Source: Octopus sinensis
Taxonomy: Eukaryota
Assembly (NCBI RefSeq): GCF_006345805.1
Contig: NC_043006.1
Location: 80,290,001-80,354,000, forward strand
Length of the DNA: 64,000 nt
Reading direction: 5' to 3'
Position 1 is the stretch's first letter. The number at the start of each line of letters is the position of its first letter. The translations under genes were made by a program, and so were the position numbers. Shown here piece by piece: positions 12,104 through 63,144 of this stretch. The notes under the pieces are model-generated. The model saw only the letters and a program-made list of their open reading frames with translations, was not told where the DNA came from and did no database searches.

Positions 12104-12179
<76 letters not shown>

Positions 12180-12559: not shown

Positions 12560-12606
<47 letters not shown>

Positions 12607-12757
12607 ATATTGAATTACATTAATCTTTCAAGATAAATTCTAAAAAGTCACGTTACTTGGAAACTGAGATGATGGTTGTTTCTTTCGTTGTACGTATAAA
12701 CATACGTACATACGCGCACGTGCGCTTATACACACGTACACACACATACACACACAC

Positions 12758-12796
<39 letters not shown>

Positions 12797-16688: not shown

Positions 16689-18450
16689 CCACCTTTTTTA
16701 TATGGACGATCTAAAGCTGTTTGCCAAGAATGACCAAGAGCTAGAAGGGCTACTAACAACTGTTAAAGAGTTTAGCAATGATATCGGAATGGAGTTTGGC
16801 CTTGATAAGTGTGCTAAAGCAACTTTTGTAAGAGGCAAGCTCAGGCAAACAGCTTCTGTTAAATTAGATATTGACACTACCATCAAGGAACTTGACCCAC
16901 AAGAAAGTTACAAATACCTAGGAATCAACGAAGGAGATGGTATACATCATGCTACTATGAAGGAAAAAATAAGAAAGGAGTACTATAGGAGAATAAGGCT
17001 TGTACTGAAGACTGAACTCAACTCCAAAAATTGCATTGAGGCCATTAACACCCTGGCACTTCCAGTAGTCCAGTACAGTTTTAACATCATTAACTGGAAC
17101 CTTACAGAACTCCAACGCTTGGACAGGAAGACAAGAAAGTTACTGACATCCAGGAGCATGCACCACCCTAAGGCAGATGTAGACCGCTTGTACCTACCTA
17201 GAAGCAGCGGGGGGAGAGGAATGATGCAATTAGAGCTGTGCTATAAGACCTCTACTGTAGGAATGAACAGGTACCTATCTAGTACAAAAGACTGGATGCT
17301 GCGACTTGTGTGTGAACACGAAAGCAGCAAAAAGCTGCATTCTATTGTCAAGGAAGCTTATAAGTTCGAAAGGGAACTAGGCATTAACCTTGAATCAGGT
17401 GAAGAGCCAGAAACCACTGCTACCAAGCAAGCAAAGCGAATCAGGCAGACTGCAAAAAAGAATGGGCAGAATCAAATTGAGAGGCGGTGGAGCCAGAAGC
17501 CCCTGCATGGACAATACATTCTCCGAAGCCAAAATGCTGATGTAGACCAAGCAACAACCCATCAGTGGCTGAAGAGTTCTGGATTGAAAGCAGAGACTGA
17601 AGGCTTCATAATGGCAGCACAAGATCAAAGCTTGTTTACCAGAAATTACCAGGCTAACGTTCTCCGAAACGGTACTGACCCTAAATGCAGATTCTGTGAC
17701 ACATTTGACGAAACAATAGACCATCTCGTTTCGGGATGTCTGTGCTGACACCAAACGAATACAAAATCGCCACGATAGGGTAGGACAGTATATACATTGG
17801 AAGATATGTAAACACTACAAATCCGACACTCCTGCTAATGGTATGAACACCATCCTCAGCCAGTTGTTGAAGGTAAAGATGTCACCATCCTCTGGGATTT
17901 TCCAGTCAACACTGACAGAACGATCAAGGCTAATCGACCAGACATAATTGTTAAAGACAGGGAAGAAAATACCTGCAGACTAATAGAAGTAAGCGTCCCC
18001 ACTGATAAAAATGTATCTGTCAAGGAATTTGACAAAGTTAGTAAATATAAGGACCTGGAAATCGAAATACAGAGGATGTGGAATCTTAAAACAAAAACTG
18101 TTCCTGTTATTGTGGGTGCCCTAGGTATGATAAAAAAGGGATGTCAGAAACACCTAGACAATATCCCTGGAAAACCATGTCTCAAGGAAATCCAAAAGAT
18201 TGTGCTAACAAGTACTGCCCACATCCTTAGAAAAACCCTATCAATGTAAATGTTTGTGTTTGTATTACATGGAGATATTTCTCTACTTCCCCTCCCCAAG
18301 CTTTCAGCTATATTTCAACAACTCTTAACCTTCACTTGCCCTAGGGCGCTGGGTGTGCTCCGGCAGGTGATTGCATCAAACATGCAGATTAAAAGTAAAT
18401 GACAATAATAATAATAATAATAATAATAATGATGATGATGATGATGATGA
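16684..18450 (+). mobile_element. 5'-truncated R4/Dong element inserted in the (TAA)n tail of the previous one
   Basis: Begins at NHLFYMDDLKLF; continues through CRFC..ETIDHLVSGC, RHD.V..IHW, NRPDIIV, EVSVP..KY.DL.IE (REL); 3' UTR and (TAA)n follow. Confidence 0.9.
16702..17748 (+). pseudogene. R4/Dong RT C-half to zinc-finger ORF fragment (348 aa)
   Basis: YMDD motif, KYLG, HHPKADVDRLYLPR..GGRG, WL..SGLK.ETEGFI.AAQDQ; stop at the C-terminal CCHC finger. Confidence 0.85.
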
Positions 18451-22800: not shown

Positions 22801-24615
22801 CGAGCCATTATTGCGGAGGTTGGACGCACTAGGGGGCGCACCGCATGGTCTATGGTATGGAAGAGGAGCTACGGCGTATGCGGATGACATCTCGATCATC
22901 GTGGCAGATGAGGGTCAGCTTCTAGTGGTGGAAGAGGCTATCAAAAGTTATGAGGCGGTGGCAGGAGCAAAGGTTAACATGGACAAGTCAATCGGTTTGC
23001 AGCTCGGCACCTGGAGGGGCAAACCGATGCAATCCAATAACGTCGTGGGGCGTTGGATGGAAGGTCCTGTTAAGCTGCTCGGAGTCTGGTTCGGGCCAGA
23101 CCTCCAGATTGAGAAAAATTGGAGTGAGGTGGCCAGGAAGGTGACCTGATCTGGGCGGGCATTATCCTTGCTAGGAAAGGCGGAGGTGGTGCAGATGTTT
23201 ATAGCATCGGTTATCACCTACCGTCTGACCGTGGTACCTTGCCCCGATTTGTGGCTGAACATGTTGGAGAGAATCCTTTTCCGCTTTTTGTGGAAGGGAG
23301 GAAAGCCACTCGTGAAGCGCTCTGTCTGCTGTCAAAAACCGCTAAAGGGTGGGCTATGAATGCCTTGGCTGAGGATGCGAAAATTCGCATTAAGGTTGAG
23401 GCACCTCTGGCTTTACCTGGATGGAGAGCAGGTGTGGTCACCGCACGTCCGGTTCTACCTTCCACAATTAACGTTCTTAACAGACGTTGGTAACTGGATC
23501 AAGCAGAGACCTAGGCTAGGGGAGTGGTAATTGGAGTGCCGCCAGGCACTTTAGCTACACTCTCGGGCAAGCGATGCCGGCAATAGGAGTCCCACCGCGG
23601 ATTTCTATAGTGGGTTTGTGGAGGTTAAATCCGAAGACGCCTTGTGGGAGACCCTGGGCTACGATGAAAATCAGTTTATCAACCTGTTCCAGAGAACTTT
23701 CAGGCGGGGCTATCTGGACAACTACCAGAGATCCCTGGCTTGGCAGTGCTTCCGTGCGGCGTTACCTGTTCGTGATAAACTGTCACGGCATGGAAATGCC
23801 GTCTCGCCGACATGTCCGAGGTGCGGGGAGGACAGGGAAACCGTCTTTCAAGCATTTGTGGAATGTCCGGAATTAACGAGACTGATAGTTTTCGCAGAAC
23901 AGCTGTTGTCATCGATGGGAAGAGTACAGCTATCAGCTGAATCTATCATCGAGACTGTGCCGCCTCCTTCCCTTAACAGGGAAAGGAAGGCTTGCTTTTC
24001 CTGCGTAGTAACCATACTGAAAGAAACAGTATGGAAGACGCGTATGAGAGGCATAGTGACGGGTACCTTTGTATCCGGCCAGGGGCTGGTTAACTTTTTT
24101 AGTTACCACCTCAGTAGTAAGATCAGGCTGGAGAAGAGGTACCTGTCACGAGATGATGGAAGCCTGTGGCGAGAAAGCTGGGAGTGTCTGACACCAGGTA
24201 AGTGGAAGCCCCCCCCCCGCAAAAAGGAAAGAAAAAACAAGGGTTCTACATTGGTGCTGGTGATGTCTATCCTTCAGGGAAGCCATTACAAATTCATTTG
24301 TAATGAGCAATGCTTAAGTCGAAAATTGTAAATATAATTATTGTATTTTTAAATCGTAAATTTTTAATCGCTACAGCTACTACACCCTTTTATGTTTGTC
24401 TGTCCTTGTTCGTCCCCTCTTTGTAATGTCTTCATGGCAAATACTTATGAAATAAAGTAGCTTGCTTACCAACCACATGGTTTCCGGTTCAGCCCCACTG
24501 CGTGGCACTTTGGGCAAGTGTCTTCTACTATAGCCTCAGGCCAACCAAAGCCTTATGAGTGGATTTGGTAGACGGAAACTGAAAGAAGCCCGTCGTATAT
24601 ATGTATATCTATATG

Positions 24616-25726: not shown

Positions 25727-26940
25727 CAGGGGTTGGACAAAATAATAGAAACACCTAGCATCAAAGCATCATAATTTTGAAATATCTATAAAACCTTCAA
25801 AAGTTTGTTTATTTTTATGTTTTTTGATTTATTATTACTGTTGCTTAATATGTTTTGCTAAAATTGCTGTTTCTTTTCATTAGGAAAAGGTAATTAAATT
25901 CATTAAAATGACTGATGTATCGTATGGTAGACGCTAGCGTAACGAAAACAGCTGAAATGTTTGGTGTATCAAGAAGTACTGTTTCGGAAGTAATGACAGC
26001 CCTTGAGAAAGGGAAAAGCCTCGTCGACACAAAACTCCGGAAGAAAACCAAAACTTTTAGATAGCGACCGTCGGACTCTTACACGAATTGTTAGAAAGGC
26101 TTCACAAGGTACAGCTCCCAAAATTTCTACAGAGTTTAATGACCACCTCGAGAACCCAGTTTCCACAAAAACTGTTCGCCGGGTACTGCACAAAGGCGGA
26201 TTTCGCGGGAGGGCTGTCATCAGAAAACCACTAATTTCAAAAACAAACGTTGCAAGGCATTTAGAGTGGAGTAAAAACCAACAGAATGGGTCTCTAGAGC
26301 AGTGGAAGAATGTTATTTTCTCGGACGTGTCATCCTTTACCTTATTTCCGACCAGCAGCTGAGTATACTTGTGGAGGCAGCCAAAAGAAGCATTTGACTC
26401 AGACGGCCTTATTCCAACTGTTAAACATGGAGGAGGATCTGTGATGATCTGGAGTGGAGGCTATATCTTGGAAATCTGCCGGTCCAATGGTTTTCCTTCA
26501 TGGTAGAATTAATAGTCAAAACTATTTAAGCATTTTATCTGATCAAATTCATCCTATAGTTGCGGAACTGTTTCCGGAGGGAAACGCAATCTTTCAGAAT
26601 GATAATGCACCAATTCACACCGCTAAAGATGTTACTGAATGGCACGAGGAACATCTTTTCTGGCCACCACAGTCATCAGATCTCAATATTATTGAACATT
26701 TATGGTGCATTTTAGAAAAACAATTAAGGAGTCGATATTCTCCGCCATCATTACTACAAGAACTATAAACTGTTTTAGCTGAAGAATGGACCAACATTCT
26801 TTTGGAAACAATTCAAACTTTGTACGAGTCCATACCTCGTAGAATTCAAGCTGTGGTTACTGCCAAGGGCGGTGCTACCCCATATTAAAATATATTTGTT
26901 TGAAATTTTAAGGTGTTTCCATTATTTTGTTCAACTCCTG
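25727..26940 (+). mobile_element. Tc1-family DNA transposon with degenerate transposase
   Basis: TIR CAGGGGTTGGACAAAATAAT.GAAACACCT at both ends; TA at left; motifs WKNVIFSD, KHGGGSVMIW, FQ.DNAPIH, WPPQS.DLNIIEHLW. Confidence 0.9.
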
Positions 26941-27115: not shown

Positions 27116-27344
27116 ATTTCGTTACTACCCACAAGGGGCTAAACACAGAAGGGACAAACAAGGACAAACAAACGGATTAAGTCGATTATATCGACCCCAG
27201 TGCGTAACTGGTACTTATTTAATCGACCCCGAAAGGATGAAAGGCAAAGTCGACCTCGGTGGAATTTGGACTCAGAACGTAGTGGCAGACGAAATACCGC
27301 AAAGCTTTCGCCCGGCGTGGTAACGTTTCTGCCAGCTCGCCGCC
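27116..27344 (-). mobile_element. SINE family 2 with Tx1-like 3' tail
   Basis: Head ggcgagctggcagaaacgtta; tail tttgtccttgtttgtccc..gtttagccccttgtgggta. Confidence 0.85.
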
Positions 27345-27667
27345 TTTTACCCGGACAGATACCGGATAAGGTTTTAACAGCTAAACACAACGATCAGTAT
27401 CTAACGATTATGATTATAATTAGATGTTAGCCGCTCCGTAAATTCTTCCGTGGGTATCTCCGTGTACTTTTCGCTGGACGGTAAAATATCATCTGGTGTA
27501 TATATTAATACTAGCATTAAAACCCGTCGTTGCCGGGTCATAGTGCTAGTGCATGTATATATGTGTATATATATGTGTACATATTACATGTACATCTATA
27601 TATATACATCTACACATAAAATACAAAATACAAAGTTATATCTTGATATCGCTAGTGATAACAATAC

Positions 27668-27988
27668 TCAAAATATATAACAGACTGGAATTGTTAGCCC
27701 GTCTCTTGTAATTTCGATCAATTGTATCTTGTCCTCCCTCTTGTATAGAAATGTGGCTACAATCCAGCCTACCTCTACTTCTGGGGGGGGGGGGGTACAT
27801 TTTGAATTTTTTCCGGGACGTCCCAGATACAAAGGTAAAAATAAAATATTCCCACTTTGCAAGTTCGAGTCGAGTACTCCCTTGCATGCTCCGTTGACTC
27901 GAACCTTGCTTCTATTGTGGCGAATTTATCGCCTCTGATTAGATACCTTTCATAGTCGCACAAAGACACTTTTCGAAGATGCTTTCCT
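27668..27988 (-). pseudogene. Downstream half of an older ORF1 (same gag-like family) interrupted by the array
   Basis: EESIFEKCL..YLIRGDKFATIEARF..GNILFLPLYLG..NVPPEVE..EDKIQLI aligns by eye with array ORF1s (EIEKCL..YVSRGKKFGTVEVR; ENIVLLPLYKG..NIPPE..EEKINIL). Confidence 0.75.
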
Positions 27989-28240
27989 CCATGTTGTTTT
28001 ATTATTACCCACAAGGGGCGAACATAGATGGGACAATACAATCTGATGATGGGGTCAGACAAACGAGTGGGTTTTTACAATAAATCGGATTTAAAAATTT
28101 TCATGAATTACAATAAATGGACAGAAATCGAATGATGGGACAGACCGGAAGACATTACGGGTGGAGTGGGTGCGGGTTTAGCTCGGACCCTACGAGCCCC
28201 GCCTCCCCACTGATACTTTTGGTTGCGCTTGGTATTACAT

Positions 28241-31200
28241 TTATGTTGTATCTTTCACTCGCAACTTTCGTGCTACATCCTTCCATCGTTCTTCATACAC
28301 TCTCCTAGTCAGGCATATTCTCTCCAGCCCTATCTTCCTTTTCAGGTGAAAGATGAAATAATTCATCAAACCAGGGCCGGAGATGAACTTGCCTGACTGT
28401 AAACCTTTCATTCTCGTCTTCCATATCACCTCTTTCGCAATTGCTACTACAACGAGAAAACGAAACTTACCTTCATTCACGAGGAAATCCGGTGGGTCAA
28501 TTTTTGTAATCGACTCAGTCGACAGCTGTACTCTTCGTGTACCTGACAACAGGTGTTCGGCATAAACCCACACCTCAGACACGTCCGGACAATGAACAAT
28601 AGCGTGCGGGACGGTTTCCCTATCCCGCCCGCATCTTGGACATATCGGACTGTCTTGGCCACCGTGCCTTGCGAGTTTATCCCGAACAGGTAGAGCTCCT
28701 CTGTAGCATTGCCATGCCAGAGACTTCTGGAAGTTGTCCAGTGTCCTCGGCTCGAACGTACGTCGGAACAGACTGGCCAGCTGATTATCGTCGAGACCTA
28801 GGGTTTCCCCCAAGGTATCTTCACATTCCGCCTCTACCAACCCTCTATAGAAGAATGTGGTGGAACCCCCACCGCAGGCGTTGCCCGAGCGACGGAATAG
28901 CAGGAGAGCCTTGCGACACTCCGTGTACCAAGTACCAAGTTTCGATCTACGATTCAGCCAGGTTTCCCATCCACCGAAACTAGTGAACTTGGGAAACATC
29001 AGTTTTGCTAGCGAAGACCACACCCGTTCACCATCCAGGTAGAGCCACAGATGTCTTAACCTCAGCGCATGTCTGCGCATCATCAGCCAAGGCATCCCTA
29101 GCCCACCCTTTAACGGTTGTTGACAGCAAGTAGAGCGTTTCACAAGTGGTTTCCCGCCCTTCCACAAGAAGTAGAAGAGCTGTCTTTCCAACTTGATCAA
29201 CCACGAATCAGGGCAAGGAACGACGGAAAGGCGGTAGGTGATAACCGATGCGATAAACACATTGGCCACCTCCGCCCTCCCTTTCAGGGATAGCCACCGC
29301 CAAGACCAGGTCTTGGCTACTGCAGCCACCTTGCTCGTTACCTCGCCCCAATTCTTCTCTATTTGGAGGTCTGGACCGAACCAGACCCCTAGCAGTTTAA
29401 TCGGACCCTCCGTCCAACGTCCCACGACGCTGTCAGGAGGCATCGACTTGCCTCTCCAGGTGCCGAGTTGCAAGCCGACTGACTTTTCGCGATTAACTTT
29501 TGCTCCTGTCACCGTCTCGTAAACCTCTATGGCCTTGCCTACTTTACATAGGTGGTCCATTTCGGTTACGATGATGGTGATGTCATCCGCGTACGCTGAC
29601 ACTGATTTTCCATTACCTGGCTGTCTCGGGATGCCGCTCAGTTTTCGCAGTAATGGCTCAAGAGCCATCACGTACAAAAGCGGGGAGAGCGGACACCCTT
29701 GACGAACCGAGCGTTTGATTTTGAACGGCTTCGACAAGAAGCCGTTCACCCGAACTACCGAGTCGATGTTATCATAAATTTGGATAATCCACCTGAGGAA
29801 GCCAAGGCTCAGCCCGAACTGTGCCAGGGCAGATACCAGGTAACGATGGTCGACCCTATCAAAAGCTTTAGATTGGTCTAATTGGACCAGTGCCCCACCC
29901 TTGCCAGAATCACTATTAAACCCCTCTATAGTGTACCGCATTAGATGGAGATTATCCTGAATGGATCTGCCCGGAACGGCACATGTCTGTGCCTCTCCGA
30001 TCAGACCATCCGCGACACGCGCCAATCTTTTCGATAACACTTTGGCCAAAATCTTCAACTCTGTGTTTAGCAGAGTGATGGGCCTGAAATTATCAATGCA
30101 CTCCCCCTTGCTCGGGTCCTTTCTGACGAGAGTCACTACTCCCGGCGCACAGATCTGGGTATAAGCCCGTTCTGCTGCCAGTTCGCATAGACCTCCGCCA
30201 GTAGGTGCCCGAACAAGTCTGGCATACTCTTATATAACTCATAGGGTAGACCATCCAAACCCGGCGCCTTGCCCGCGCGCAGTCCGCCATTGCCTCAACC
30301 ACCTCCTCAGGCGTGATTGGCCCTTCACAGCCCTCCGCATCTCGCCCCGATAAGCGCGGCAGCCCGTCGAGTAGGTCCGTAAAGGCCCTCCTCCTATCCA
30401 GTCCGCCGCACTCACCGAAAAGCTGAGCGAAGTGCTCCTGAAAGGCCTCACACATCTCCTCGGGTTCGTTTATCAACTCACCTTGTTGGTTCGTCAAAGA
30501 TCGAATCGTGGCATCGTTACCATGCCGAGCTTCCACCACTCGGGCCCATCTCACGGCGTTGATTCCTTCACATCCCATATGGCGGATTCTAGCCCTGACA
30601 ATGCAGCCCATGTGTTTGGCCTCGAGGTGCTGGTTTAACACCAGTCTCTTGGACGCCACCTGAGCCGCAGAGCCAGTTTTCATGGCTTCCTCTAATTCCT
30701 TAACTAGAGTAGTTTCCCTTCTAGCCTCTCTAGCCACTACTCCTATGCTATATCTAATAGACTCAAACTTGATGGCTCGTTTGAGGGCGTACCACCATTT
30801 GTTATTAATGATGGTACCAGATAGTGCCCTCTGAATTATATTCCTAATCCGGTCTTTGTACTCCTTAATCGCCAAAAGGGACGTATTAAGTTTCCAGTAC
30901 CCGGATCCTCTATTTTTAACCTTATCTATGTCAAGCTTACAAGTGACCATTTTATGATCACTGTAGCTGATCGGGTAAAACTGTGGACACTTAGCTATTT
31001 TACTGTCTACTTTTCTAATTAGTATTCTATCTAAATATGACCTGGAAGATCCGTCGCTGTTTGACCATGTCCACAATGGAGCGTTCGGAAATTCCAGCCT
31101 ATAAGGATCTGCTAGCTCAAAGCGGCTTAGCAGTTCCATGAAGCCACTGTTGCCTTTTCTATCTGGACACGAGCCAACATAATCTACATCCGCTTTGCAA

Positions 31201-31634
31201 ATTGTGTTAAAGTCTCCTAGCACCACTAATGAATGCGAAGTACCAAGAAAGTTTTCTAGTTCACGAAAATAATCACTTTGCCCTGTATGGTTGGGTGCGT
31301 AAATTGCAACCAGTCTGATAACTTTACCATTACTGAACGTCAAATCCATGACGACCAGCCTACCTTCTGGATCTGCAAAAATTAACTTTTTCTCAGAAAC
31401 CCGGTTTCTTTTTAATAGGACCAACACCCCACTCCCGCCTGTAGGACTGCCAGGAGAGAAAAAACTCTCGTAGCCGTCAAACAGCGGGAGTAGACCTCTT
31501 GGCCCCTCTAACCGGGTTTCTGTAGCAACAATAACATCTAAATTACGCGACCTGATATCATGCAGGAAGCGACCTTGCTTCCAGCCTGCTCCCAGGCCGC
31601 GCACATTCAAACAACCAACATAAATGTAATCCAT
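28241..31634 (-). CDS. ORF2: APE endonuclease + reverse transcriptase + C-terminal zinc-binding region (~1130 aa if two 1-nt G-run deletions are corrected)
   Basis: ORF track 30093-31634 (CLNVRG, ATETRL, AIYAP, LGDFN, SYLDRI, SDHKMV) and 28241-30136 (RPITLLN, DQSKAFDRVDH, QGCPLSP, AYADDI); frame breaks at ~30272 and ~30142. Confidence 0.9.
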
Positions 31635-31659
31635 TACTTACCTTATATCAGTGGTTCGG

Positions 31660-33058
31660 TTTTCTCTTGTTCTTCTAACTCTTTTTCTGGGCCTCGTGGG
31701 GGAGTCTGACGTAGGCCCTCGAATATATGTGGAGATGTCACATCCAATCTAAGTGGGCCTACGTCATGGAAGAATTCTGACTTTATCCGCCCGTAATCCT
31801 TCCGGCCTATTCTGTAAATTACAAAGTCGTTTTTTTCACTACTTTCTCCACTTTGGCCATGGCTGCCAACACGTTTCCGAGTCTGCTATTTGCTGCCTTT
31901 ACGGCCATATACGAGTTCATTGACTCTTTTTTCTTTTTTAAAATTACTCTGGGAGGGGTGGTTTCCGTTTTTCTTTTTTTTTTTTCCGGTAATTTTTGCC
32001 CACCCCTCCTCATTTATCTTTTCCTCGCTCTTTTTTTCCTCCGCCGCTGGTTCTGCTGTCACCGTCACCTCCACACCTTCAGTCTTCCCTTCTGGGCCGT
32101 CCGACGCTGCTTCTGGTGACACATTATCTTCTTTTTCTTTTGGCTTAGGTGCTTCCTGCGGTTTGGGTTGGGGTTGGCATTCCGCCCTTACATGACCCTT
32201 CTTGCCGCAGCCGAAGCACCTCGGCTTCCTGCCCTCCACGAAAACTGTTATTTTCTCGTCTTCACTAATCTTTACCGTTTCTGGAATTTCTTCCAGTGTT
32301 TGCACCTCCGCCTGAATGGCTATCACTATTTTCTGCCCTTTCCAGAACTCCTCTTCCTCCACTGTGGCCTGGAGGATGTTTATTTTTTCCTCCAGACCTA
32401 CCATCACTGCTGCCACCAGACATTCAGCATCTGCCTCTGGCGGTATGTTGTTCATTGAAATTTTCGACGTCCTTTTTCCTTTATACAATGGTAGTAAGAC
32501 AATGTTTTCCGCTTTGATTGGCTCCATCGATATTTTCTTCGCTATCTCCTCCGTAGTAAAACGCACCTCCACTGTGCCGTATCTTTTTCCTCTGTTTATA
32601 TACGTTATTTTATCCATAAAAGTTTTAGACAAGACTCTATTTTTTTTTTTTCGATTTTTGGATCATTTTTTTCGTTGTGTCGTAAGTTTTATATATTATT
32701 CTTTTTTTTTCTATATCGTCATGTATTTGTATGTTGTGGCCACAGTCACTTCTGTGCCTTCTTTTTTTACACAGTCTGCAAATTTTTAAAAATTTTCTAT
32801 ATTTATTTTTTTGATCTTTTTCCCAGCCACTTCAGCGAATTTTTTTGCTGGAGTTGATGCTGGTACTGGTTTTTCCATTTTCTTGGGCGACGCCGCCTCT
32901 TTTTTCTTCGGCGACAACGCTTCTTTTTTTCTTGGCGACAACGCCTCTTTTTTACTTGGCGACAACGCCGGGTATTCATCCTCGTTCGTCACGGGCGAAT
33001 AAGAGATGGGGGACTCCATCTTGAACAAATGGCTATAACAAGCCTTTGGAAATTCCAA
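31660..33058 (-). CDS. ORF1 gag-like protein with CCHC zinc knuckle (frameshifts in A-runs)
   Basis: 31886-32632 contains VEGRKPRCFGCGKKGHVRAEC (CX2CX4HX4C); the N-terminal part is in 32786-33058 and neighbouring frames; the C-terminal end is approximate. Confidence 0.8.
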
Positions 33059-33244
33059 ATTAATTGTAGTTTTCCCCCACTGAGGGGGAACACCAACGCG
33101 AAGTCCTCGCGCGAAGGCTGACTTTGACAGTTAGACAGTAATGTACACAACGGTAGACAAACAGTATATAAAAACAGAGATAATACGACGAGAGCAAAAT
33201 ATATAACTTACTAATAAACGCAAAAATAGCTTGGAGCCATGTGA

Positions 33245-35000
33245 TTTTATTATTACCCACAAGGGGCGAACATAGAGGGGACAATACAATCGGGGAACTT
33301 AAAATAAGAAAGCGAATGACAAGAAAAGGAAAAAATAAAAGTAAAAAATGACATATGAAAGAATATTTACAATGAGATGTAAATGCCCATCGATCCCGGA
33401 ATCGAGAGGTTACATTTTCGTCACATATATTTCACAATATTTTTTTTCTCTTCTTTCTTCTCTCTCTTCTCACAATTCTATACATATTCCATGATAGCTT
33501 TCAATTCTCTAAAGTCCATCACTGAGCCCTCAGGCAGCCGCTCTCTCACTCGAACACTCGTGTAAAACGTTACACTCTCTCCGGCAGCTCTGAGGAACTC
33601 AGCGACTCTTTCTTCGGGGATTAGAGCAGTCTCCTGTTGACCCATATATGTCCCTCCGTATTACATGTCAATTCTTTCATTTCAGGGCAGAAATGGAAGG
33701 TTACTAACTTGTAGAAGCAGTAATCTTGTTTCCGTCCTACGTTTTCCTTCATTTTTCTTTTCGGGCTTATTTCTTCCTTGTTCTCCTCTCTTTGTTTCTC
33801 TCTTTCTCTCTTTTTGCCTTCTTTTCTTTCTCCTCTCTTCTCTTGTCTTTTTGGTTCTTTGTCTGTTCTCTCTTTCTCTCGTGTTTTATGTTCCTTTTCT
33901 TTTTCTTTTTGTGTGCCGTCTTTTCTTTTCGTTTGATTCTGATCTCTCTCTTGTTTTTTTCCTGTTGTTTCTTTTTCCTTTTTTTTTTCCTGACTCTGTT
34001 TTGGTTCTATTTCTTTCTTTTCTTTTATTTCTTTTTCCTTCATTGACTTATTATTTCCTTTCTCTTGTTGTTTTGTTTCCTTTTCTATGTTTTCTTTTTC
34101 ATTTACCGTATTCTTCTTTTCTTCAAGTTCCTGCTCGCACTCCGCTACGAATTCGTATAACGGGCACTCTTTTTTAATGTGCCCCCTTGTCCCGCACAAG
34201 TAACAGTTTGGTTTTCTTCCCTCTACAATTACACTGAGGGTTTTTTCATCTTCAATTTCTATTCTGTAGGGGAACCTTTCAATGTCCTCTTTTGTGGCCA
34301 TCAAACACAGTTCTACCCCATATCCTCTCCAGTTTACCGCGTTGGACTCCTTAAAGGATTCCACCTCCACTTCCTCTTCTTCTGCTGCTCCTAGAATAGC
34401 TGTTGCCAGCCATTCTGTTTTCACTTCTGGGGGTATATTCGGGATTTTAACCCGGACCCCTCTTCTTCCCTTGTATGAGGGCCACATTATAAATTTTTCG
34501 GCTCTTAGTACAGTGGTAGCCAGTGAGGCTGCAATTTCTTCCGTTGCACATCTCACCTCCACCGTACCAAATTTCTTGCCTCTACTCACGTAGGTTGATT
34601 TCCCCATTATGTCTCCCAGACATTTTTCGATTTCGGCTATCTCCACTCTTGCCAGTTTCTTCGTATTTTTGTCTTGGGTTCTATATGTCACTGTCTTGTT
34701 TTCTTTGTCCTCTTTTGCTTTCGCGGGGGGGATTAGCTTCACGCTATCACCCTCCCTTTTGAAGAGCTTTTCATATTCTTTGAGTTTACTCTTCTCAAAG
34801 AAAACATCCTTCACAATTATCGACGAATCATTATTTTTTTTTCCCGTGACCCCCGCGTAAGTCGCCATGACTAGAGGGTCTATTCACCTTCTTCGGAACG
34901 TTTCCACACGTGGAGGCAAACGCCTCGCGCGATAATAATCAATTTACACAGAACAAAGTTTCACTGTCTAGTCACAGATAACAACACGTATAGCTTGGAG
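33245..35000 (-). mobile_element. ORF1-only non-autonomous retroelement, unit B1
   Basis: 5' CTCCAAGCTAT, single ORF, no ORF2, 3' tail shared with the autonomous LINE. Confidence 0.9.
33621..34868 (-). CDS. ORF1/gag-like protein, 415 aa (about 469 aa without the 19-bp deletion near the C-terminus)
   Basis: MATYAGV start, KPNCYLCGTRGHIKKEC knuckle, long K/E-rich tract, C-terminal domain truncated compared with units B2/B3. Confidence 0.85.
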   Translation of the reverse strand: MATYAGVTGKKNNDSSIIVKDVFFEKSKLKEYEKLFKREGDSVKLIPPAKAKEDKENKTVTYRTQDKNTKKLARVEIAEIEKCLGDIMGKSTYVSRGKKFGTVEVRCATEEIAASLATTVLRAEKFIMWPSYKGRRGVRVKIPNIPPEVKTEWLATAILGAAEEEEVEVESFKESNAVNWRGYGVELCLMATKEDIERFPYRIEIEDEKTLSVIVEGRKPNCYLCGTRGHIKKECPLYEFVAECEQELEEKKNTVNEKENIEKETKQQEKGNNKSMKEKEIKEKKEIEPKQSQEKKKEKETTGKKQERDQNQTKRKDGTQKEKEKEHKTREKERTDKEPKRQEKRGERKEGKKREREKQREENKEEISPKRKMKENVGRKQDYCFYKLVTFHFCPEMKELTCNTEGHIWVNRRLL

Positions 35001-35008
35001 CCATGTGA

Positions 35009-36781
35009 TTTTATTATTACCCACAAGGGGCGAACATAGAGGGGACAATACAATCGGGGAACTTAAAATAAGAAAGCGAATGACAAGAAAAGGAAAAAAT
35101 AAAAGTAAAAAATGACATATGAAAGAATATTTACAATGAGATGTAAATGCCCACTCGATCCCCGGAATCGAGAGGTTACATTTTCGTCACATATATTTCA
35201 CAATATTTTCTTTTTTCTCTTCTTTCTTCTCTCTCTTCTCACAATTCTATACATATTCCATGATAGCTTTCAATTCTCTAAAGTCCATCACTGAGCCCTC
35301 AGGCAGCCGCTCTCTCACTCGAACACTCGTGTAAAACGTTACACTCTCTCCGGCAGCTCTGAGGAACTCAGCGACTCTTTCTTCGGGGATTAGAGCAGTC
35401 TCCTGCCACTGATCGGTCATCCTGTTGACCCATATATGTCCCTCCGTATTACATGTCAATTCTTTCATTTCAGGGCAGAAATGGAAGGTTACTAACTTGT
35501 AGAAGCAGTAATCTTGTTTCCGTCCTACGTTTTCCTTCCTTTTTTCTTTTCGGGCTTATTTCTTCCTTGTTCTCCTCTCTTTGTTTCTCTCTTTCTCTCT
35601 TTTTGCCTTCTTTTCTTTCTCCTCTTTCTCTTGTCTTTTTGGTTCTTTGTCTGTTCTCTCTTTTTCTCGTGTTTTATGTTCCTTTTCTTTTTCTTTTTGT
35701 GTGCCGTCTTTTCTTTTCGTTTGATTCTGATCTCTCTCTTGTTTTTTTCCTGTTGTTTCTTTTTCCTTTTTTTTTTCTGACTCTGTTTTGGTTCTATTTC
35801 TTTCTTTTCTTTTATTTCTTTTTCCTTCATTGACTTATTATTTCCTTTCTCTTGTTGTTTTGTTTCCTTTTCTATGTTTTCTTTTTCATTTACCGTATTC
35901 TTCTTTTCTTCAAGTTCCTGCTCGCACTCCGCTACGAATTCGTATAACGGGCACTCTTTTTTAATGTGCCCCCTTGTCCCGCACAAGTAGCAGTTTGGCT
36001 TTCTTCCCTCTACAATTACACTGAGGGTTTTCTCATCTTCAATTTCTATTCTGTAGGGGAACCTTTCAATGTCCTCTTTTGTGGCCATCAAACACAGTTC
36101 TACCCCATATCCTCTCCAGTTTACCGCGTTGGACTCCTTAAAGGATTCCACCTCCACTTCCTCTTCTGCTGCTCCTAGAATAGCTGTTGCCAGCCATTCT
36201 GTTTTCACTTCTGGGGGTATATTCGGGATTTTAACCCGGACCCCTCTTCTTCCCTTGTATGAGGGCCACATTATAAATGTTTCCGCTCTTAGTACAGTGG
36301 TAGCCAGTGAGGCTGCAATTTCTTCCGTTGCACATCTCACCTCCACCGTACCAAATTTCTTGCCTCTACTCACGTAGGTCGATTTCCCATTATGTCTCCC
36401 AGACATTTTTCGATTTCTGCTATCTCCACTCTTGCCAGTTTCTTTGTATTTTTGTCTTGGGTTCTATATGTTACAGTCTTGTTTTCTTTGTCCTCTTTTG
36501 CTTTCGCGGGGGGGATTAGCTTCACGCTATCACCCTCCCTTTTGAATAGCTTTTCATATTCTTTGAGTTTACTCTTCTCAAAGAAAACATCCTTCACGAT
36601 TATCGAGAAATCATTATTTTTCTTTCCCGTGACCCCCGCGTAAGTCGCCATGACTAGAGGGTCAATTCACCTTCTTCGGAAGGTTTCCACACGTAGAGGC
36701 AAACGCCTCGCGCGATATTAATCACTTTACACAACAAATTTTCAACGTCTAATCACAGATAACAATACGTATAGCTTGGAG
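35009..36781 (-). mobile_element. ORF1-only unit B2
   Basis: Near-identical to B1; ORF split by single-base indels (36370-36651, 35525-36406, 35247-35468). Confidence 0.9.
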
Positions 36782-36789
36782 CCATGTGA

Positions 36790-38568
36790 TTTTATTACTA
36801 CCCACAAGGGGCGAACATAGATGGGACAGTACAGTCGGGGAACTTAAAATAAGAAAGCGAATGACAAGAAAAGGAAAAAATAAAAGTAAAAAATGACATA
36901 TGAAAGAATATTTACAATGAGATGTAAATGCCCACTCGATCCCCGGGATCGAGAGGTTACATTTTCGTCACATATATTTCACAATATTTTCTTTTTTCTC
37001 TTCTTCTTTCTTCTCTCTCTTCTCACAATCTATACGTATTCCATAATAGTTTTCAATTCTCTAAAGTCATCACTGAGCCCTCAGGCAGCCGCTCTCTCAC
37101 TCGAACACTCGTGTAAAACGTTACACTCTCTCCGGCAGCTCTGAGGAACTCAGCGACTCTTTCTTCGGGGATTAGAGCAGTCTCCTGCCACTGATCGGTC
37201 ATCCTGTTGACCCATATATGTCCCTCCGTATTACATGTCAATTCTTTCATTTCAGGGCAGAAATGGAAGGTTATTAACTTGTAGAAGCAGTATTCTTGTT
37301 TCCGTCCTACGTTTCCCTCGTTTTTCTTTTCGGGCTTATTTCTTCCTTGTTCTCCTCTCTTTGTTTCTCTCTTTCTCTCTTTTTGCCTTCTTTTCTTTCT
37401 TCTTCCTTCTCTTGTCTTTTTGGTTCTTTGTCTGTTCTCTCTTTCTCTCTGTTTTTATGTTCATTTTCTTTTTCTTTTTGTGTGCCGTCTTTTTCTTTTC
37501 GTTTGATTCTGATCTCTCTCTTGTTTTTTTCCTGTTGTTTCTTTTTCCTTTTTTTTTTTCTGACTCTGTTTTGGTTCTATTTCTTTCTTTTCTTTTATTT
37601 CTTTTTCCTTCATTGACTTATTATTTCCTTTCTCTTGTTGTTTTGTTTCCTTTTCTATGTTTTCTTTTTCATTTACCGTATTCTTCTTTTCTCTTCAAGT
37701 TCCTGCTCGCACTCCGCTACGAATTCGTATAACGGGCACTCTTTTTTAATGTGCCCCCTTGTCCCGCACAAGTAGCAGTTTGGCTTTCTTCCCTCTACAA
37801 TTACACTGAGGGTTTTCTCATCTTCAATTTCTATTCTGTAGGGGAACCTTTCAATGTCCTCTTTTGTGGCCATCAAACACAGTTCTACCCCATATCCTCT
37901 CCAGTTTACCGCGTTGGACTCCTTAAAGGATTCCACCTCCACTTCCTCTTCTGCTGCTCCTAGAATAGCTGTTGCCAGCCATTCTGTTTTCACTTCTGGG
38001 GGTATATTCGGGATTTTAACCCGGACCCCTCTTCTTCCCTTGTATGAGGGCCACATTATAAATGTTTCCGCTCTTAGTACAGTGGTAGCCAGTGAGGCTG
38101 CAATTTCTTCCGTTGCACATCTCACCTCCACCGTACCAAATTTCTTGCCTCTACTCACGTAGGTCGATTTCCCCATTATGTCTCCCAGACATTTTTCGAT
38201 TTCTGCTATCTCCACTCTTGCCAGTTTCTTTGTATTTTGTCTTGGGTTCTATATGTTACAGTCTGTTTTTTTCTTTGTCCTCTTTTGCTTTCGCGGGGGG
38301 GATTAGCTTCACGCTATCACCCTCCCTTTTGAATAGCTTTTCATATTCTTTGAGTTTACTCTTCTCAAAGAAAACATCCTTCACGATTATCGAGAAATCA
38401 TTATTTTTCTTTCCCGTGACCCCCGCGTAAGTCGCCATGACTAGAGGGTCAATTCACCTTCTTCGGAAGGTTTCCACACGTAGAGGCAAACGCCTCGCGC
38501 GATATTAATCACTTTACACAACAAAATTTCAACGTCTAATCACAGATAACAACACGTATAGCTTGGAG
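36790..38568 (-). mobile_element. ORF1-only unit B3
   Basis: Near-identical to B1/B2; ORF pieces 38256-38438, 37673-38215, 37053-37250. Confidence 0.9.
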
Positions 38569-38572
38569 CCTA

Positions 38573-40484
38573 TTTTATTATTACCCACTAGGGGCTACAT
38601 AGATGGGACAATACAATCGGGAATGAATAATGAATTATGAAGTTTGTACAATGTGGTGTAATGCCCACTCGATCCCCGAAATCGAGCGGTTACATTTTCG
38701 TCATTTGTTTTTATTCGTCAACATATTTTCCAAATAAAACATTTTTACATTTTCAACATACATTTCAAAAGTTTTACAAAGTTCAACATTTCTTTTTTTT
38801 TTTTTTTCAGAATTTAAAGTTCTTTTTATCATTTCCAAATTAAGTTTTCACAATACCTTTTCTTTTATATATACTCCATTATGTCTACCAAATCTGAGTA
38901 AACTTCCATTGTTCGAGGCCACCTTGTAAGTCGGCATTTCATATGTTTTGACACGTTCTCGCCAGCTGCCTCGATGAACGCCTCGGCGTCGTTCTCGTGG
39001 ACGAGTGCACCTGTTTCTTTCCATTCGGTGCCCATCCTGACCCACGTATATCCGTTTGTTACGCTTATTAAATCTTCCATCTCCTCACAGTTCCTGTGAT
39101 GGATCAACGTTCCATAGTATTTGAATTTTCTATTCGTACCTACGTTTTCTCTAGTTTTTTCTTAGGACTTACTTCCTCTTTTTTCTCCTCCCTCGTTTCT
39201 CTCTTTCTCTCTTTTTGCTTTCTCTTCTTTTTTTTCCTTCTCTTGTCTTTTTGGCTCTTTGTCTGCCGTCTCTCTACCCTGTGCCTTAAGTTCCATTCCT
39301 GTTGTTTCTTTCCTTTTTGCATACCATCTTTTCCTTTCTCTTGGTTCTGTTCCTTCTCTTGTTCTTTTTCTACTTTTTCTCTTCCCTTTAATGTACTTTC
39401 CTTTCTTTTCTCTTCTTCTGCCTTGGCTCCTTCTCCACTACTTCTGCACCCTGTGAATTTGCTCCTTTTCTACTATCTTCTTCCCTTTGTTTTCATTTTC
39501 CTTCAGTGCGCTGTTACTTCCCTTCTCTTGTTGTTTCTCCGTTATTTCCTTTTCCTTGTTTTCGCTGTTCTTTCCTTCATGTTCGTTTTCCTTCTCTCCA
39601 CTTTGTGTCTCTTTTTGCTCCGCTGTAAATTCATACAGCGGACATTCCGTTTTTATGTGCCCTCTTGATCCGCACAGGTAGCAATTCGGTTTTCTGCCTT
39701 CCACTATTACACTAATTGTCTTCTCGTTTTCTATTTCTATTTGGAAGGGAAATCTTTCGATGTCTTCCATTGTGGCCATTAGCCACAACTCTACTCCGAA
39801 TCCCTTCCAATTTACAACGTTCGTCTCCTTAATTGACCCTATTTCTACTTCCTCTTTTGCTGCCCCAATAATGGCTGTTACCAGCATTTCTGTTTTAATA
39901 TTTGGGGGCACCTTTGGGACTCTTACCCGTACCCCTCGTCTTCCTTTATACGTCGGCCACATGGTGAAATTTTCCGCTTTCAGGACATTGGAAGCCAATG
40001 AGGCCGCCACTTCCTTTGTTGCGCATCTCACCTCCACCGTACATATTTCTTTCCTCTGTCTACAAAAGTCGCTTTTTTCATGATGTCTCCCAGACATTTC
40101 TCTATTTCTTCAATCGTCACTCTCACCAGTTTTCTCGTGTTTCTATCTTGCGTTCTATACGTTATCGTCTTGTTAATTTTTTCTTCTATTGTTTTCACAG
40201 GCGGGACCAGCTTCACGCTGTCACCCTCCCTTTTGACGAACTTCTCGTATTCCTTCAATTGTTCTTTTCTAAAGAACACTTCTCTTATTCTAAGAGACTC
40301 GTCACTTTTTGTTGTGGCGACCCCCGCGTAAGTCTCCATGACTTGAGGGTCGACACACCTTCTATAAAAGGTTCAAACACGTAGCGGCAAACGCCTCGCG
40401 CGATTCAATTTTTTGACAACTTTTAACAGTCTTTTTTCAATTTTCACATATAAATAACTCACAACACACGTATATAACTTGGAG
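38573..40484 (-). mobile_element. ORF1-only unit A2 (second subfamily)
   Basis: METYAGV start at 40339; pieces 39438-40097 and 38865-39107; same 5' motif and 3' tail; different UTR body from B. Confidence 0.9.
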
Positions 40485-40492
40485 CCATGTTG

Positions 40493-42404
40493 TTTTATTA
40501 TTACCCACTAGGGGCTACATAGATGGGACAATACAATCGGGAATGAATAATGAATTATGAAGTTTGTACAATGTGGTGTTGTAATGCCCGCTCGATCCCC
40601 GAAATCGAGCGGTTACATTTCGTCAATTAATTTGTTCGTCAACAATATTTTCAAAAAAACATTTTTTACATTTTCAACTACATTTCAAAAAGTTTTACAA
40701 AGTTCAACATTTCCTTTTTTTTTTTTTTTTCAGAATTTAAAGTTCTTTTTATCATTTCCAAATTAAGTTTTCACAATACCTTTTATTCTATACACTCCAT
40801 TATGTCTACCAAATCTGAGTAAAGTTCCATCGTTCGAGGCCACTTTTAAGTCGGCATTTCATATGTTTTAACACGTTCTCGCCAGCTGCCTCGATGAACG
40901 CCTCGGCGTCGTTCTCGTGGATGAGTGCACCTGTTCTTCCCATTCGGTGCCCATCCTGACCCACGTATATCCGTTTGTTGCGCTTATTAAATCTTCCATC
41001 TCCTCACAGTGCTTGTGATGGATCAACGTTCCATAGTATTTGTATTTTCTATTCGTACCTACGTTTTCTCTAGTTTTTCTCTTAGGACTTACTTCCTTTT
41101 TTCTCCTCCCTCGGTTTCTCTCTTTCTCTCTTTTTGCTTTCTCTTCTTTCTTTTCCTTCTCTTGTCTTTTTGGCTCTTTGTTCTGCCGTCTCTCTACCCT
41201 GTGCCTTAAGTTCCTTTCCTGTTGTTTCTTTTCCTTTTTGCATACCATCTCTTTCCTTTCTCTTGTTTCGTTCCTTCTCTTGTTCTTTTCCTGCTTTTTC
41301 TCTTTCCTTTAATGTACTTTCTTTTCTTTCTCTTGCTCTGCCTTGGCTCCTTCTCCACTACTTCTGCACCCTGTGAATTTTGCTCCTCTTCTACTATCTT
41401 CTTCCCTTTGTTTTCATTTTCCTTCAGTGCGCTGTTACTTCCCTTCTCTTGTTGTTTCTCCGTTATTTCCTTTTCCTTGTTTTCGCTGTTCTTTCCTTCG
41501 TGTTCGTTTTCCTTCTCTCCACTTTGTGTCTCTTTTTGCTCCGCTGTGATTCATACAGCGGACATTCCTTTTTTATGTGCCCTCTTGATCCGCACAGGTA
41601 GCAGTTCGGTTTTCTGCCTTCCACTATTACACTAATTGTCTTCTCGTTTTCTATTTCTATTTGGAAGGGAAATCTTTCGATGTCTTCCATTGTGGCCATT
41701 AGCCACAACTCGACTCCGAATCCCTTCCAATTTACAACGTTCGTCTCCTTAATTGACCCTATTTCTACTTCCTCTTTTGCTGCTCCAATAATGGCTGTTA
41801 CCAGCATTTCTTTTAATATTGGGGGACCTTTGGGACTCTTACCCGTACCCCTCGTCTTCCTTTATAAGTCGGCCACATGGTGAAATTTTCCGCTTTCAGG
41901 ACAGTGGAAGCCAATGAGGCCGCCACTTCCTTTGTTGCGCATCTCACCTCCACCGTACCATATTTCTTTCCTCTGTCTACAAAAGTCGCTTTTTTCATGA
42001 TGTCCCCCAGACATTTCTCTATTTCTTCAATCGTCACTCTCACCAGTTTTCTCGTGTTTCTATCTTGCGTTCTATACGTTATCGTGATGTTTGTTATTTT
42101 TCTCTTCTATTGTTTCCACAGGCGGGACCAGCTTCACGCTATCACCCTCCCTTTTGACGAACTCTCGTATTCTTTCAATTGTTCTTTTTAAAAGAACACT
42201 TCTTTTATTCTAAGTGACTCGTCACTTTTTGTTGTGGCGACCCCCGCGTAAGTCTCCATGACTTGAGGGTCGACACACCTTCTATAAAAGGTTCAAACAC
42301 GCAGCGGCAAACGCCTCGCGCGATTCAATTTTTGACAACTTTTAACCGTCTTTTTTCAATTTTCACATATAAAATAACTCACAACACACGTATATAGCTT
42401 GGAG
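40493..42404 (-). mobile_element. ORF1-only unit A1
   Basis: Near-identical to A2; start codon at ~42259. Confidence 0.9.
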
Positions 42405-42620
42405 CCAGGTTTTCAAATCTTTTTTCTCTACATTGTATACTTTATAGACAATAGTCTTTTCTTTAATTTCATTTTTTATTATCCATCTGGACTATTCCAT
42501 TTCTGCACGCTAATCTTATTTTTAATTTATTCCCATTCATGTGAAACCACTTATTCAAGTTCAAATCATTGATGCGATTTTATACCAATTGCTATTTTTA
42601 CTTTTGTCGTGTTACTTTAG
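42405..42620 (-). pseudogene. Upstream half of the older interrupted ORF1
   Basis: Minus strand LNKWFHMNGNKLKI.. and EIKEKTIVYKVYNVEKKDLKT aligns with ENKTVTYRTQDKNTKK in the units and joins to 27988. Confidence 0.6.
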
Positions 42621-42734
42621 TTTGATTTTAATTATTACTTACTACATATAATTCAATTGTTATTATTATTTTCATTGTTAAAGTGAAAGTATCTGACATA
42701 AAATAGAGAAACGTTTTTGTTTCACTTTCAACAC

Positions 42735-43082
42735 GTAATACTGAAATAGTGGAGAAGATATGATATTGCTATGGGATCGCTCTAGGCAAGAAGTTGAACA
42801 TTTTTTTGCCGATGACACTTCCCGGACCCTAAGTAAGGCATGTGTAAAATTTGAATGGAATTGGTTGTGTAGTTCTGAAGTTTTAGGGAATCGTAGTGGA
42901 GAAGATCTGATATTGCTGTGGGCTCGCCCTAGGCAAAAAGTTCAAAATTGTTTTTGCCGATGACACTCCCCGGACCCTAAGTAAGACATGTGTAAAATTT
43001 GAATGAAATTGGTTGTGTAGTTCTCAAGTTTTAGGGAAACACACAGACAGACACACATTCTCAGTTTTATATATATAAAGAT
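42735..43082 (-). mobile_element. Helitron/Helentron-type non-autonomous repeat with two ~140-bp internal tandem units
   Basis: Minus 5' atctttatatataaaactgagaatgtgtgtctgtctg; near-identical copy at 62720-63068. Confidence 0.65.
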
Positions 43083-43280
43083 AGATTAATAATGATAAAA
43101 AGTATGGAGACTTGTACATCCACAAAATACATTTTATAGTTATATACAACATATTATAAATACATAGACCTGTTTCCGTTGCAGCGACTTCTCATTATTG
43201 CAAATGCATCCTTGCAATATTATCGGTGCAATATATATACATATACATACATACATATATATAGCGAGAGAGAGAGAGAG

Positions 43281-63068: not shown

Positions 63069-63144
<76 letters not shown>

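Follow-up and report, generated by a model that had tools for sequence, protein, structure and literature searches.

Stacks of ORF1-only elements beside one autonomous L1/Tx1-type LINE at fixed sites of a dispersed octopus repeat

How does a chromosome come to carry six retrotransposons laid end to end, only one of which encodes a reverse transcriptase (RT)? The question is posed by a window of 64,000 nucleotides (nt) of Octopus sinensis DNA, the whole stretch analysed here (NCBI RefSeq assembly GCF_006345805.1, contig NC_043006.1, positions 80,290,001 to 80,354,000). On the minus strand of the window, from 42406 down to 27991, six elements follow one another tail to head in the order A2-A1-B3-B2-B1-AUTO. 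AUTO is a long interspersed nuclear element (LINE) with open reading frame (ORF) 1 and the apurinic/apyrimidinic endonuclease (APE) and RT of ORF2. The other five elements (B1-B3 and A1-A2), 1.76-1.92 kb long, encode a CCHC-knuckle ORF1 and nothing else, ORF2 being absent; we call them half-LINEs. An earlier note, made from the letters of the window alone, had described same-strand elements joined tail to head and short units with a single CCHC ORF1, and the unit boundaries, shared termini, ORFs and domain content confirm both. Our preferred reading, to which we give a probability of roughly 0.7, is that the array is a stack formed by one L1/Tx1-type family group, AUTO together with half-LINEs that would borrow its ORF2 protein (ORF2p), piled up by repeated target-specific insertion plus local recombination.

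The six elements are tied together by their termini. Each starts with GGCTCCAAG(C/T)TAT (6/6; six matches where 0.92 would be expected by chance) and ends with GTGGGTA(A/G)TAATAAAA (6/6, against 0.07 expected), and the 10-nt box TCGCGCGAGG in the 5' untranslated region (UTR) occurs once in each unit (six, against 0.07). Unit ends are followed by TCACAT, CAACAT or TA, so that the spacers measure 2-6 nt; the short junctions reported by the earlier note are real, although it had put them at 4-8 bp. It had also matched the 3' ends of the short units to the last ~45 nt of AUTO, and measurement gives 47-53 nt at 91-94% for all five; the DNA comparison in the window found no match between AUTO and the short units beyond this stretch. 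All that the ORF1-only families and AUTO have in common is a 5' end of ~13 nt, the 10-nt 5'UTR box and a 3' box of ~55 nt. The 3' box, which includes an AATAAA, is conserved across AUTO, four ORF1-only families (A, B, C and D) and a short interspersed nuclear element (SINE). The only RNA structure predicted in it is an invariant 3-bp hairpin, for which there is no covariation. The box variant at the 3' end of the SINE (Table 1) supports the view that the box is a signal common to clients, and from its sequence the SINE is probably a further client of the AUTO-type RT. This SINE of ~300 nt, with its 3'-box variant, is present in many copies, for example at 58923-59143 (+) and 4859-5078 in the window, and at 472-922 and 39033-39267 of the Octopus vulgaris loci L002 and L005 introduced below.

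Within the window B1-B3 are 97-99% identical to one another, A1 and A2 95.4%, and A and B 70%, and units of the window differ at 22-87 positions. Apart from strand and spacer length, the layout given in the earlier note is correct, but all six copies prove to be defective. AUTO ORF1 contains stops, and its ORF2 is split by a frameshift at ~30100-30136 that separates APE from RT. A long ORF is kept in B1 only, B2, B3, A1 and A2 having several frameshifts each.

Table 1. Features of the array and its host repeat in the window, and layout of the corresponding O. vulgaris loci (positions are those of the window unless a locus is named)
Feature	Position	Strand	Description
A2	40487..42406	-	1920 nt; ORF1-only, family A; heavily frameshifted
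A1	38571..40486	-	1916 nt; ORF1-only, family A; ORF pieces of 103 and 219 amino acids left; CCHC knuckle
B3	36784..38570	-	1787 nt; ORF1-only, family B; six frameshifts relative to an intact copy
B2	35003..36783	-	1781 nt; ORF1-only, family B; four frameshifts
B1	33239..35002	-	1764 nt; ORF1-only, family B; 415-amino acid ORF at 33621-34868; 19-nt deletion near the C-terminus
AUTO	27991..33238	-	5248 nt; autonomous L1/Tx1-type LINE; ORF1 remnants at 31886-33058, interrupted by stops
AUTO APE ORF	30093-31634	-	Exo_endo_phos, 4.7e-14
AUTO RT ORF	28241-30136	-	RVT_1, 4.7e-32; zf-RVT, 6.3e-09
3' box of AUTO	27997..28051	-	...TGTCCCATCTATGTTCGCCCCTTGTGGGTAATAATAAAA
3' box at ends of short units	33245-33291, 35009-35055, 36790-36836, 38573-38618, 40493-40538	-	
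SINE copy	27116..27346	-	3' end with a variant of the LINE 3' box, ...TTAGCCCCTTGTGGGTAGTAACGAAAT
UP, upstream half of host repeat	42407..43086	-	~680 bp; ends ...GAGAAAAAAGATTTGAAAACCT at the array
148-bp monomers in UP	43038-42894, 42890-42747	-	two
DN, downstream half of host repeat	27499..27990	-	~490 bp; starts GGAGGAAAGCATCTTCG, ends ...GACCCGGCAACGACGGGTTTTAATGCTAGTAT
AUTO'	L005 11202-16223; L008 11164-16334		variant autonomous element; first ~390 nt unalignable with AUTO, rest 80-95% identical
L001			UP - 8 B - AUTO
L002			UP - B - AUTO - DN
L003			at least 8 B - AUTO - DN
L004			D unit and C unit stacked inside a SINE; AUTO absent; outside the host repeat
L005			UP - 2 A - AUTO' - DN
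L006			UP - 4 B - AUTO - DN
L007			UP - D - B - B/A chimera - AUTO - DN
L008			UP - A - AUTO' - DN
L009			UP - 2 D' - B - AUTO - DN
L010			UP - 6 D-type - B - AUTO - DN

Is this a single accident of one chromosome? A protein search with the B1 ORF gave nine matches, all of them uncharacterized or unnamed proteins of O. vulgaris, and ten loci (L001-L010) from the chromosome-level O. vulgaris assembly GCA_951406725.2 were mapped by BLAST (Table 1). Ten arrays on seven chromosomes (the window, L001-L003 and L005-L010) share one general form, in which the upstream half of a host repeat (UP) is followed by a number of ORF1-only units, one AUTO and the downstream half of the host repeat (DN). There is exactly one AUTO, always 3'-most, in 10/10 host-repeat arrays, and up to eight ORF1-only units precede it. 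At least 45 ORF1-only units lie at the 11 loci, and members of the protein clusters are found on further chromosomes. Window unit B2 is 94-98% identical to B units of seven other loci, and A-family units are present also at L005, L007 and L008. Families are mixed within arrays: A with B in the window, D with B in L009 and L010, and D with B and a B/A chimera in L007. The unit adjoining AUTO is a B unit, and the unit adjoining the variant AUTO' is an A unit. The earlier note had proposed looking for recurrence beside the autonomous family in a related cephalopod genome, and nine O. vulgaris arrays of the same layout, each with one AUTO, provide it. None of the three findings that the note had set against its own proposal turned up: the units are not confined to this locus but dispersed over several chromosomes, and neither a near-identical ORF2-bearing parent for each subfamily nor an array created by assembly was found. 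The ORF1-only units are annotated in O. vulgaris as runs of separate protein-coding genes (CAI9715245-51 and others), described as uncharacterized or '---NA---'.

The half-LINEs form at least four families (A-D) on many chromosomes. DNA identity among A, B and C is 70-75%, and D and B proteins are ~30% identical. The ORF1 of B and A is 29-32% identical to that of AUTO in global alignment and 33-38% in local alignment, close to the third of residues estimated by eye in the earlier note. All A, B and C units have a 3'UTR hairpin motif, GACGAAAATGTAACCKCTCGAT..., which is absent from the rest of the ~300 kb of sequence examined, every AUTO copy included. The motif points to one ORF1-only ancestor of A, B and C rather than three separate deletions, and together with the ORF1 divergence it upholds the proposal that the short units did not arise by simple deletion from the AUTO beside them. 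ORF1 is still intact in some copies, with 467 amino acids (L001 unit 4, family B) and 453 amino acids (the L007 D unit). Between families the ratio of nonsynonymous to synonymous substitution rates (dN/dS) of ORF1 is 0.13 (B-A), 0.19 (B-C) and 0.18 (A-C), with dS of 1-2, and in the RRM (RNA recognition motif)-like and knuckle part it falls to 0.06-0.08. Low dN/dS at a dS of at least 1 means that ORF1 has been kept by selection over a long time; purifying selection has acted on the ORF1 of lineages that are old, and the long-lived lineages postulated in the earlier note are thereby supported. The AlphaFold model of the ORF1 protein (ORF1p) has a mean pLDDT of 48 with a better-predicted core at residues 60-250, and a Foldseek search with this core returned tandem-RRM proteins at low TM-score. 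It is suggestive only of a protein with RRM-like domains, a CCHC knuckle, a Lys/Glu-rich stretch and a C-terminal region.

AUTO is assigned from its sequence to the L1/Tx1 type, a joint label for a LINE whose RT is L1-like. Its domain order, with an N-terminal APE, an RT and a C-terminal zinc-binding domain, fits the L1/Tx1 group, and among solved structures its RT best matches human L1 ORF2p (3.9e-32), R2 being weaker (1e-19). A 2026 repeat annotation of O. vulgaris recognises 13 recently active L1-Tx1 families, under the joint label 'L1-Tx1' only (PMC13282606). The closest named relative found was a hypothetical protein of Argonauta hians with 57% identity. A search with ORF2 found no annotated O. 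vulgaris protein of the AUTO family, the best match being 60% identical. Whereas the window copy is broken, the AUTO of L002, 98.7% identical to it, has an intact ORF2 of 1129 amino acids, and a competent helper is therefore probably present in the genome. AUTO copies fall into two groups that differ by 0.3-2% within and 8% between groups. AUTO' is confined to the host-repeat variant that lacks the canonical insertion site, and is always preceded by A units. Two decayed L1/Tx1-type remnants lie on the opposite strand of the window, one at 16702-17748 (+) with RVT_1/zf-RVT and one at 20999-24331 (+) with APE, RT and zf-RVT; over 3 kb the latter shows 67% identity to AUTO, and the 3' box is absent from it.

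Where, then, do the stacks sit? They lie inside a dispersed repeat of ~1.2 kb, a location absent from the earlier note. UP (~680 bp) flanks the arrays of L001, L002 and L005-L010 at 88-93% identity, its copies differing from one another by 7-9%, whereas AUTO copies can differ by as little as 0.3-1.3%. DN with an identical 3' end follows AUTO in L002, L003, L006, L007, L009 and L010, and in L005 and L008 only the last ~200 nt of DN follow AUTO'. DN always ends in ...GCTAGTAT, adjoining (TA)n or unique DNA. At the canonical junctions the left side reads ...GATTTGAACACAT followed by the head sequence described below, and the right side ...AATAATAAAACA ACAT followed by GGAGGAAAGCACCTTCG; the insertion point, between ...TTTGAAC(ACAT) and GGAGGAAAGCACC..., is the same in eight host-repeat copies. 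A second fixed insertion point, between ...CTAA(CAAT) and TCCAGTCTG..., is used in the two variant host-repeat copies of L005 and L008. These variants are without ~310 bp that include the canonical site, and their stacks interrupt DN ~300 nt further on. Their arrays are flanked by a duplicated CAATTCCAGTCT, with UP and ...CTAACAATTCCAGTCT on the left and CAATTCCAGTCTGTTATA... repeated on the right. The pre-insertion junction, ...TTTGAACACAT GGAGGAAAGCACC..., is a reconstruction from the end of UP and the start of DN. Divergence is also uncoupled along the loci, the window and L002 being 98.7% identical in AUTO, 92.6% in UP and 94.7% in DN. Because the array occupies two positions relative to UP and DN and the divergences are uncoupled, UP and DN are not UTRs of the array; the array is a site-specific insertion into an older dispersed repeat.

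A few observations concern the host repeat itself. A partial second UP copy with 148-bp monomers, 85-93% identical, lies at 62717-63202 (-) in the window; it begins behind a long (TA)n, gives way to a SINE-like fragment and is not an empty target site. No terminal inverted repeats of the host repeat were seen on reading both of its ends. The last ~200 nt of DN (27499-27695 in the window) are 98-99% identical between loci, whereas the adjacent 300 nt differ by ~9%, and DN terminates in a hairpin (ACCCGGCAACGACGGGT) beside (TA)n. This pattern suggests a host repeat that is a retroposon in its own right, its 3' end being conserved for recognition.

The junctions between units provide the link between target and stack. 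Each unit body is separated from the tail of the preceding unit by 13-20 nt, the head, which resembles the downstream flank of the locus: it reads GGAGGAAA... where the canonical site is used, TCCAGTCT... where the alternative site is used and CAGAAACGTYAGCAC at the SINE site of L004, where a copy of CAGAAACGTYAGCAC precedes each of the D and C units. The internal SINE position used, before CAGAAACGTTAGCAC, is an insertion site of tail-bearing elements in L004 and also in L006. In the mechanism that we propose, half-LINE RNAs would be bound by their own ORF1p and copied in trans by the ORF2p of AUTO-type elements through the shared 3' box, as would the box-bearing SINE. Insertion would be directed to the canonical site of the host repeat, with the site-less host variant struck at the alternative point and one SINE position also used. 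Each insertion would leave a target-derived head of 13-20 nt before the new unit, so that a usable site would persist and further insertions would accumulate in a head-to-tail stack. Local duplication and shuffling of units would follow, by unequal crossing-over, gene conversion or RT template switching. We infer both the determinants of target choice and the direction in which arrays would grow.

Several points weigh against this mechanism. Mobilisation in trans and recognition of the 3' box are argued from analogy. Simple repeated insertion does not predict a single, always 3'-most AUTO in every host-repeat array. The heads are not clean target-site duplications, reading GGCTCCAAGCTAT or GGAGGAAATCAAT where the downstream flank reads GGAGGAAAGCACC, and some head variants are shared between loci, the GGAGGAAATCAAT of AUTO being identical in six. 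Because of such sharing, some of the head sequence may be carried by the RNA itself; in L001 and the window, head variants are array-specific. An empty copy of the host repeat was not found in the ~300 kb examined. Since ORF2 proteins of the family are unannotated in O. vulgaris, all loci were reached through ORF1, and the sample is one of loci with annotated ORF1 proteins and not a genome-wide census. Private substitutions are too few to establish the age order of units in an array or its direction of growth. Lastly, a 1-nt deletion in a run of C (unit position 278) is common to many B copies (12/19 B units across three loci); it frameshifts ORF1 and is patchy on the tree. It may reflect recurrent slippage, homopolymer sequencing error, a tolerated or programmed frameshift, or many copies that are dead on arrival.

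The invariant position of AUTO invites a more specific version of our reading, in which half-LINEs would be obligate 'stackers', homing to the 5' edge of an AUTO copy already in place. It is suggested because all ten host-repeat arrays end in exactly one AUTO, and we hold it only tentatively. The guide could be the junction sequence carried in 3' read-through RNA, or the half-LINEs' own diverged ORF1p. If true, the system would be an endonuclease-dependent, interstitial counterpart of the chain building of Drosophila HeT-A, with several ancient gag-only lineages competing for one self-renewing landing pad beside their helper.

The same regularity is explained directly by the main rival, the formation of each stack as a concatemer in a single event. 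Target-primed reverse transcription would start on AUTO RNA through cis-preference and the RT would jump end to end to the 3' boxes of partner RNAs. The R2 RT is known to jump between templates end to end (cited in PMC4494074). The B units consist of two haplotypes (alpha and beta) and mosaics of them, as seen from site patterns, and L007 contains a chimera (12047-13679) in which a B-type head and 5'UTR are joined to an A-type ORF1 from about codon 90, with loss of the start codon. Chimera and mosaics point to families that often recombine, or between which the RT often switches templates, and such units suggest a switch-prone RT. The near absence of private substitutions within arrays, 0-5 in each unit of L001, L003 and L006, also fits a single event. 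However, template jumps do not predict junctions of 13-20 nt that copy the flank, found also at the alternative site of L005 and L008 and at the SINE site of L004, and the D-C stack of L004 has no AUTO at all. In L007 a B unit with 64 private substitutions adjoins a D unit whose ORF is intact, and the units of one array therefore differ in age. We consider single-event concatemers unlikely on balance, with repeated insertion the better explanation of the junctions.

If units were added one at a time, at which end? On mechanistic grounds growth at the 5' end would be the simplest model, the upstream copy of a duplicated target keeping the original left context. It fits L007, where the intact D is 5' and the diverged B downstream; the window fits less well, its 5' units being more decayed. 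A reading of the B-unit tree as a time-ordered ladder by array position was rejected, given the alpha/beta mosaics and a root that outgroup polarisation places between the two haplotypes (17 sites vs 12). Movement of B and AUTO as one read-through unit was likewise rejected, since the divergences of AUTO and of the adjacent B are discordant across seven loci (r = 0.30): L001 and L002 differ by 8.0% in AUTO vs 0.7% in B, L001 and L003 by 0.5% vs 3.6%.

Could the arrays have been made by local amplification only, from one internally deleted LINE duplicated in tandem by unequal crossing-over in the manner of a satellite? Some duplication of this kind has taken place, since in the B-unit tree the window copies B1-B3 fall into a clade of their own, with a support of 99, and units 4-6 of L001 are near-identical; the array-specific head variants of L001 and the window agree with it. 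As the sole explanation it is refuted and we regard it as improbable. Unit families and haplotypes recur at ten or more loci on eight chromosomes, and arrays mix families that are only 30-70% alike; the haplotypes and mosaics common to arrays on different chromosomes, together with the mixed families, exclude pure local tandem duplication. The ORF1 of the half-LINEs is, moreover, only ~32% identical to that of the adjacent AUTO.

Less probable still is that UP, array, AUTO and DN make up one large element that moves whole, with UP as 5'UTR, DN as 3'UTR and the ORF1 cassettes as internal repeats. The tandem monomers of UP do resemble some LINE promoters, the UP copy of L006 is 5'-truncated, and DN ends at one fixed nucleotide by (TA)n in all loci, with the ~200 conserved nt described above. 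Against it, the array is found at two positions relative to UP and DN, and a separate flanking duplication accompanies each of them. SINE copies, as well as D and C units that lie elsewhere than in the host repeat, really do terminate in the 3' box, and from locus to locus UP, AUTO and the adjacent B diverge independently of one another. Finally, an assembly artefact, a collapsed or expanded repeat, is scarcely credible even though near-identical 1.8-kb units are hard to assemble and the frameshifts cluster in homopolymers, as the same architecture with other unit numbers and variants occurs at nine loci of the independent assembly GCA_951406725.2 and the units of the window differ from one another at the 22-87 positions given above.

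Two further mobile-element remains lie in the window outside the array. One is a Tc1/mariner transposase remnant (HTH_Tnp_Tc3_2, DDE_3) at 26003-26768 (+), ~700 bp downstream of the host-repeat end. The other is an ORF of 420 amino acids at 53588-54850 (-), in which the RT motif YVDD is followed by a GIY-YIG-like C-terminus (YIGETSRS...); it is Penelope-like in appearance and has no Pfam match at E <= 0.01.

How do the octopus stacks compare with known systems? The earlier note had called them HeT-A/TAHRE-like, with HeT-A as the classic gag-only element. A premise that gag-only LINE derivatives are known from Drosophila telomeres and hardly elsewhere would be wrong, since HAL1, from the L1 group, and TRE5-A.2 are also ORF1-only and mobilised in trans. 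If our mechanism is right, the octopus elements would behave like HAL1, TRE5-A.2 or HeT-A, as half-LINEs that borrow ORF2p. HAL1, which keeps ORF1 without ORF2, has had more than one origin and needs ORF2p supplied in trans (PMC5753468, citing Bao & Jurka 2010). Like HAL1, the octopus units combine LINE termini with ORF1, lack ORF2 and exist as many dispersed copies of the same architecture. Unlike HAL1, they have an ORF1p with RRM-like domains and a CCHC knuckle in place of the mammalian coiled-coil/RRM/C-terminal domain type, a specific 3' box instead of a poly(A) tail, and site-specific, array-forming insertion, with four diverged families coexisting. With a cephalopod host and another type of ORF1p, they are an analogue of HAL1 and not a member.

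TRE5-A.2 of Dictyostelium, also ORF1-only, relies in trans on the ORF2p of TRE5-A.1 and integrates with the same preference as that element, its ORF1p taking part in target choice (PMC5391098). It is, however, a recent deletion derivative that has its helper's ORF1, whereas the octopus ORF1 is ~30% identical to that of its helper and the lineages are old (dS of at least 1). In the HeT-A/TART/TAHRE system the gag-only HeT-A is commoner than its RT-bearing relatives, forms head-to-tail arrays and has a gag under selection (PMC5537684). This is reminiscent of the octopus, where gag-only units outnumber the RT-bearing AUTO in uniform head-to-tail arrays and ORF1 is under selection, and to this extent, gag-only units in chains, the likeness drawn in the earlier note holds. 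It does not extend to the mode of addition. The Drosophila elements, members of the Jockey clade, are attached to chromosome ends; their junctions have poly(A), and no target flank is present distally. The octopus arrays have an L1-like RT and are interstitial, lying between both halves of the host repeat, with target-derived duplications and no poly(A). The intact flanks, the target-derived duplications, the lack of poly(A) junctions and a partner that encodes an endonuclease mean that site-specific insertion explains the chains better than end healing.

Closer in mode of insertion is Tx1L of Xenopus, an APE-type LINE that inserts at one defined position of the dispersed repeat Tx1D (PMC4494074). 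In SINEU-3, a SINE mobilised by Tx1-clade LINEs and inserted in Mariner-N4_AMi, tandem copies sandwich a 16-bp target-site duplication, which Kojima attributed to sequential insertion (PMC4494074). As in these cases, the octopus array occupies one site of a repeat, clients share the target, and flank-like sequence stands between tandem units. The octopus clients differ in being protein-coding and ORF1-only, with up to eight units in a stack; no terminal inverted repeats were seen in their host repeat, their heads are inexact, and each host-repeat stack is closed by exactly one autonomous copy. The apparent novelty lies in bringing together several old, selected ORF1-only lineages and a site-specific L1/Tx1-type LINE, in stacks of up to eight units that the helper closes. 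A limited literature search, which is not proof, found no mention of such arrays, the 2026 O. vulgaris repeat annotation (PMC13282606) included.

Protein-coding, ORF1-only parasites of LINEs are rare, the known cases being HAL1, HeT-A and TRE5-A.2. In octopus at least four lineages with saturated synonymous divergence and under purifying selection coexist with their helper and outnumber it. For the annotation of O. vulgaris, the arrays annotated as genes inflate the gene count and should be masked. The invariant 3' position of the helper is a striking regularity and directly testable. The system bears on the contribution that ORF1p makes in cis, since here a parasite retains ORF1 long-term while discarding ORF2, on the capture of ORF2p by non-autonomous RNAs through a short 3' box, and on the choice and re-use of target sites.

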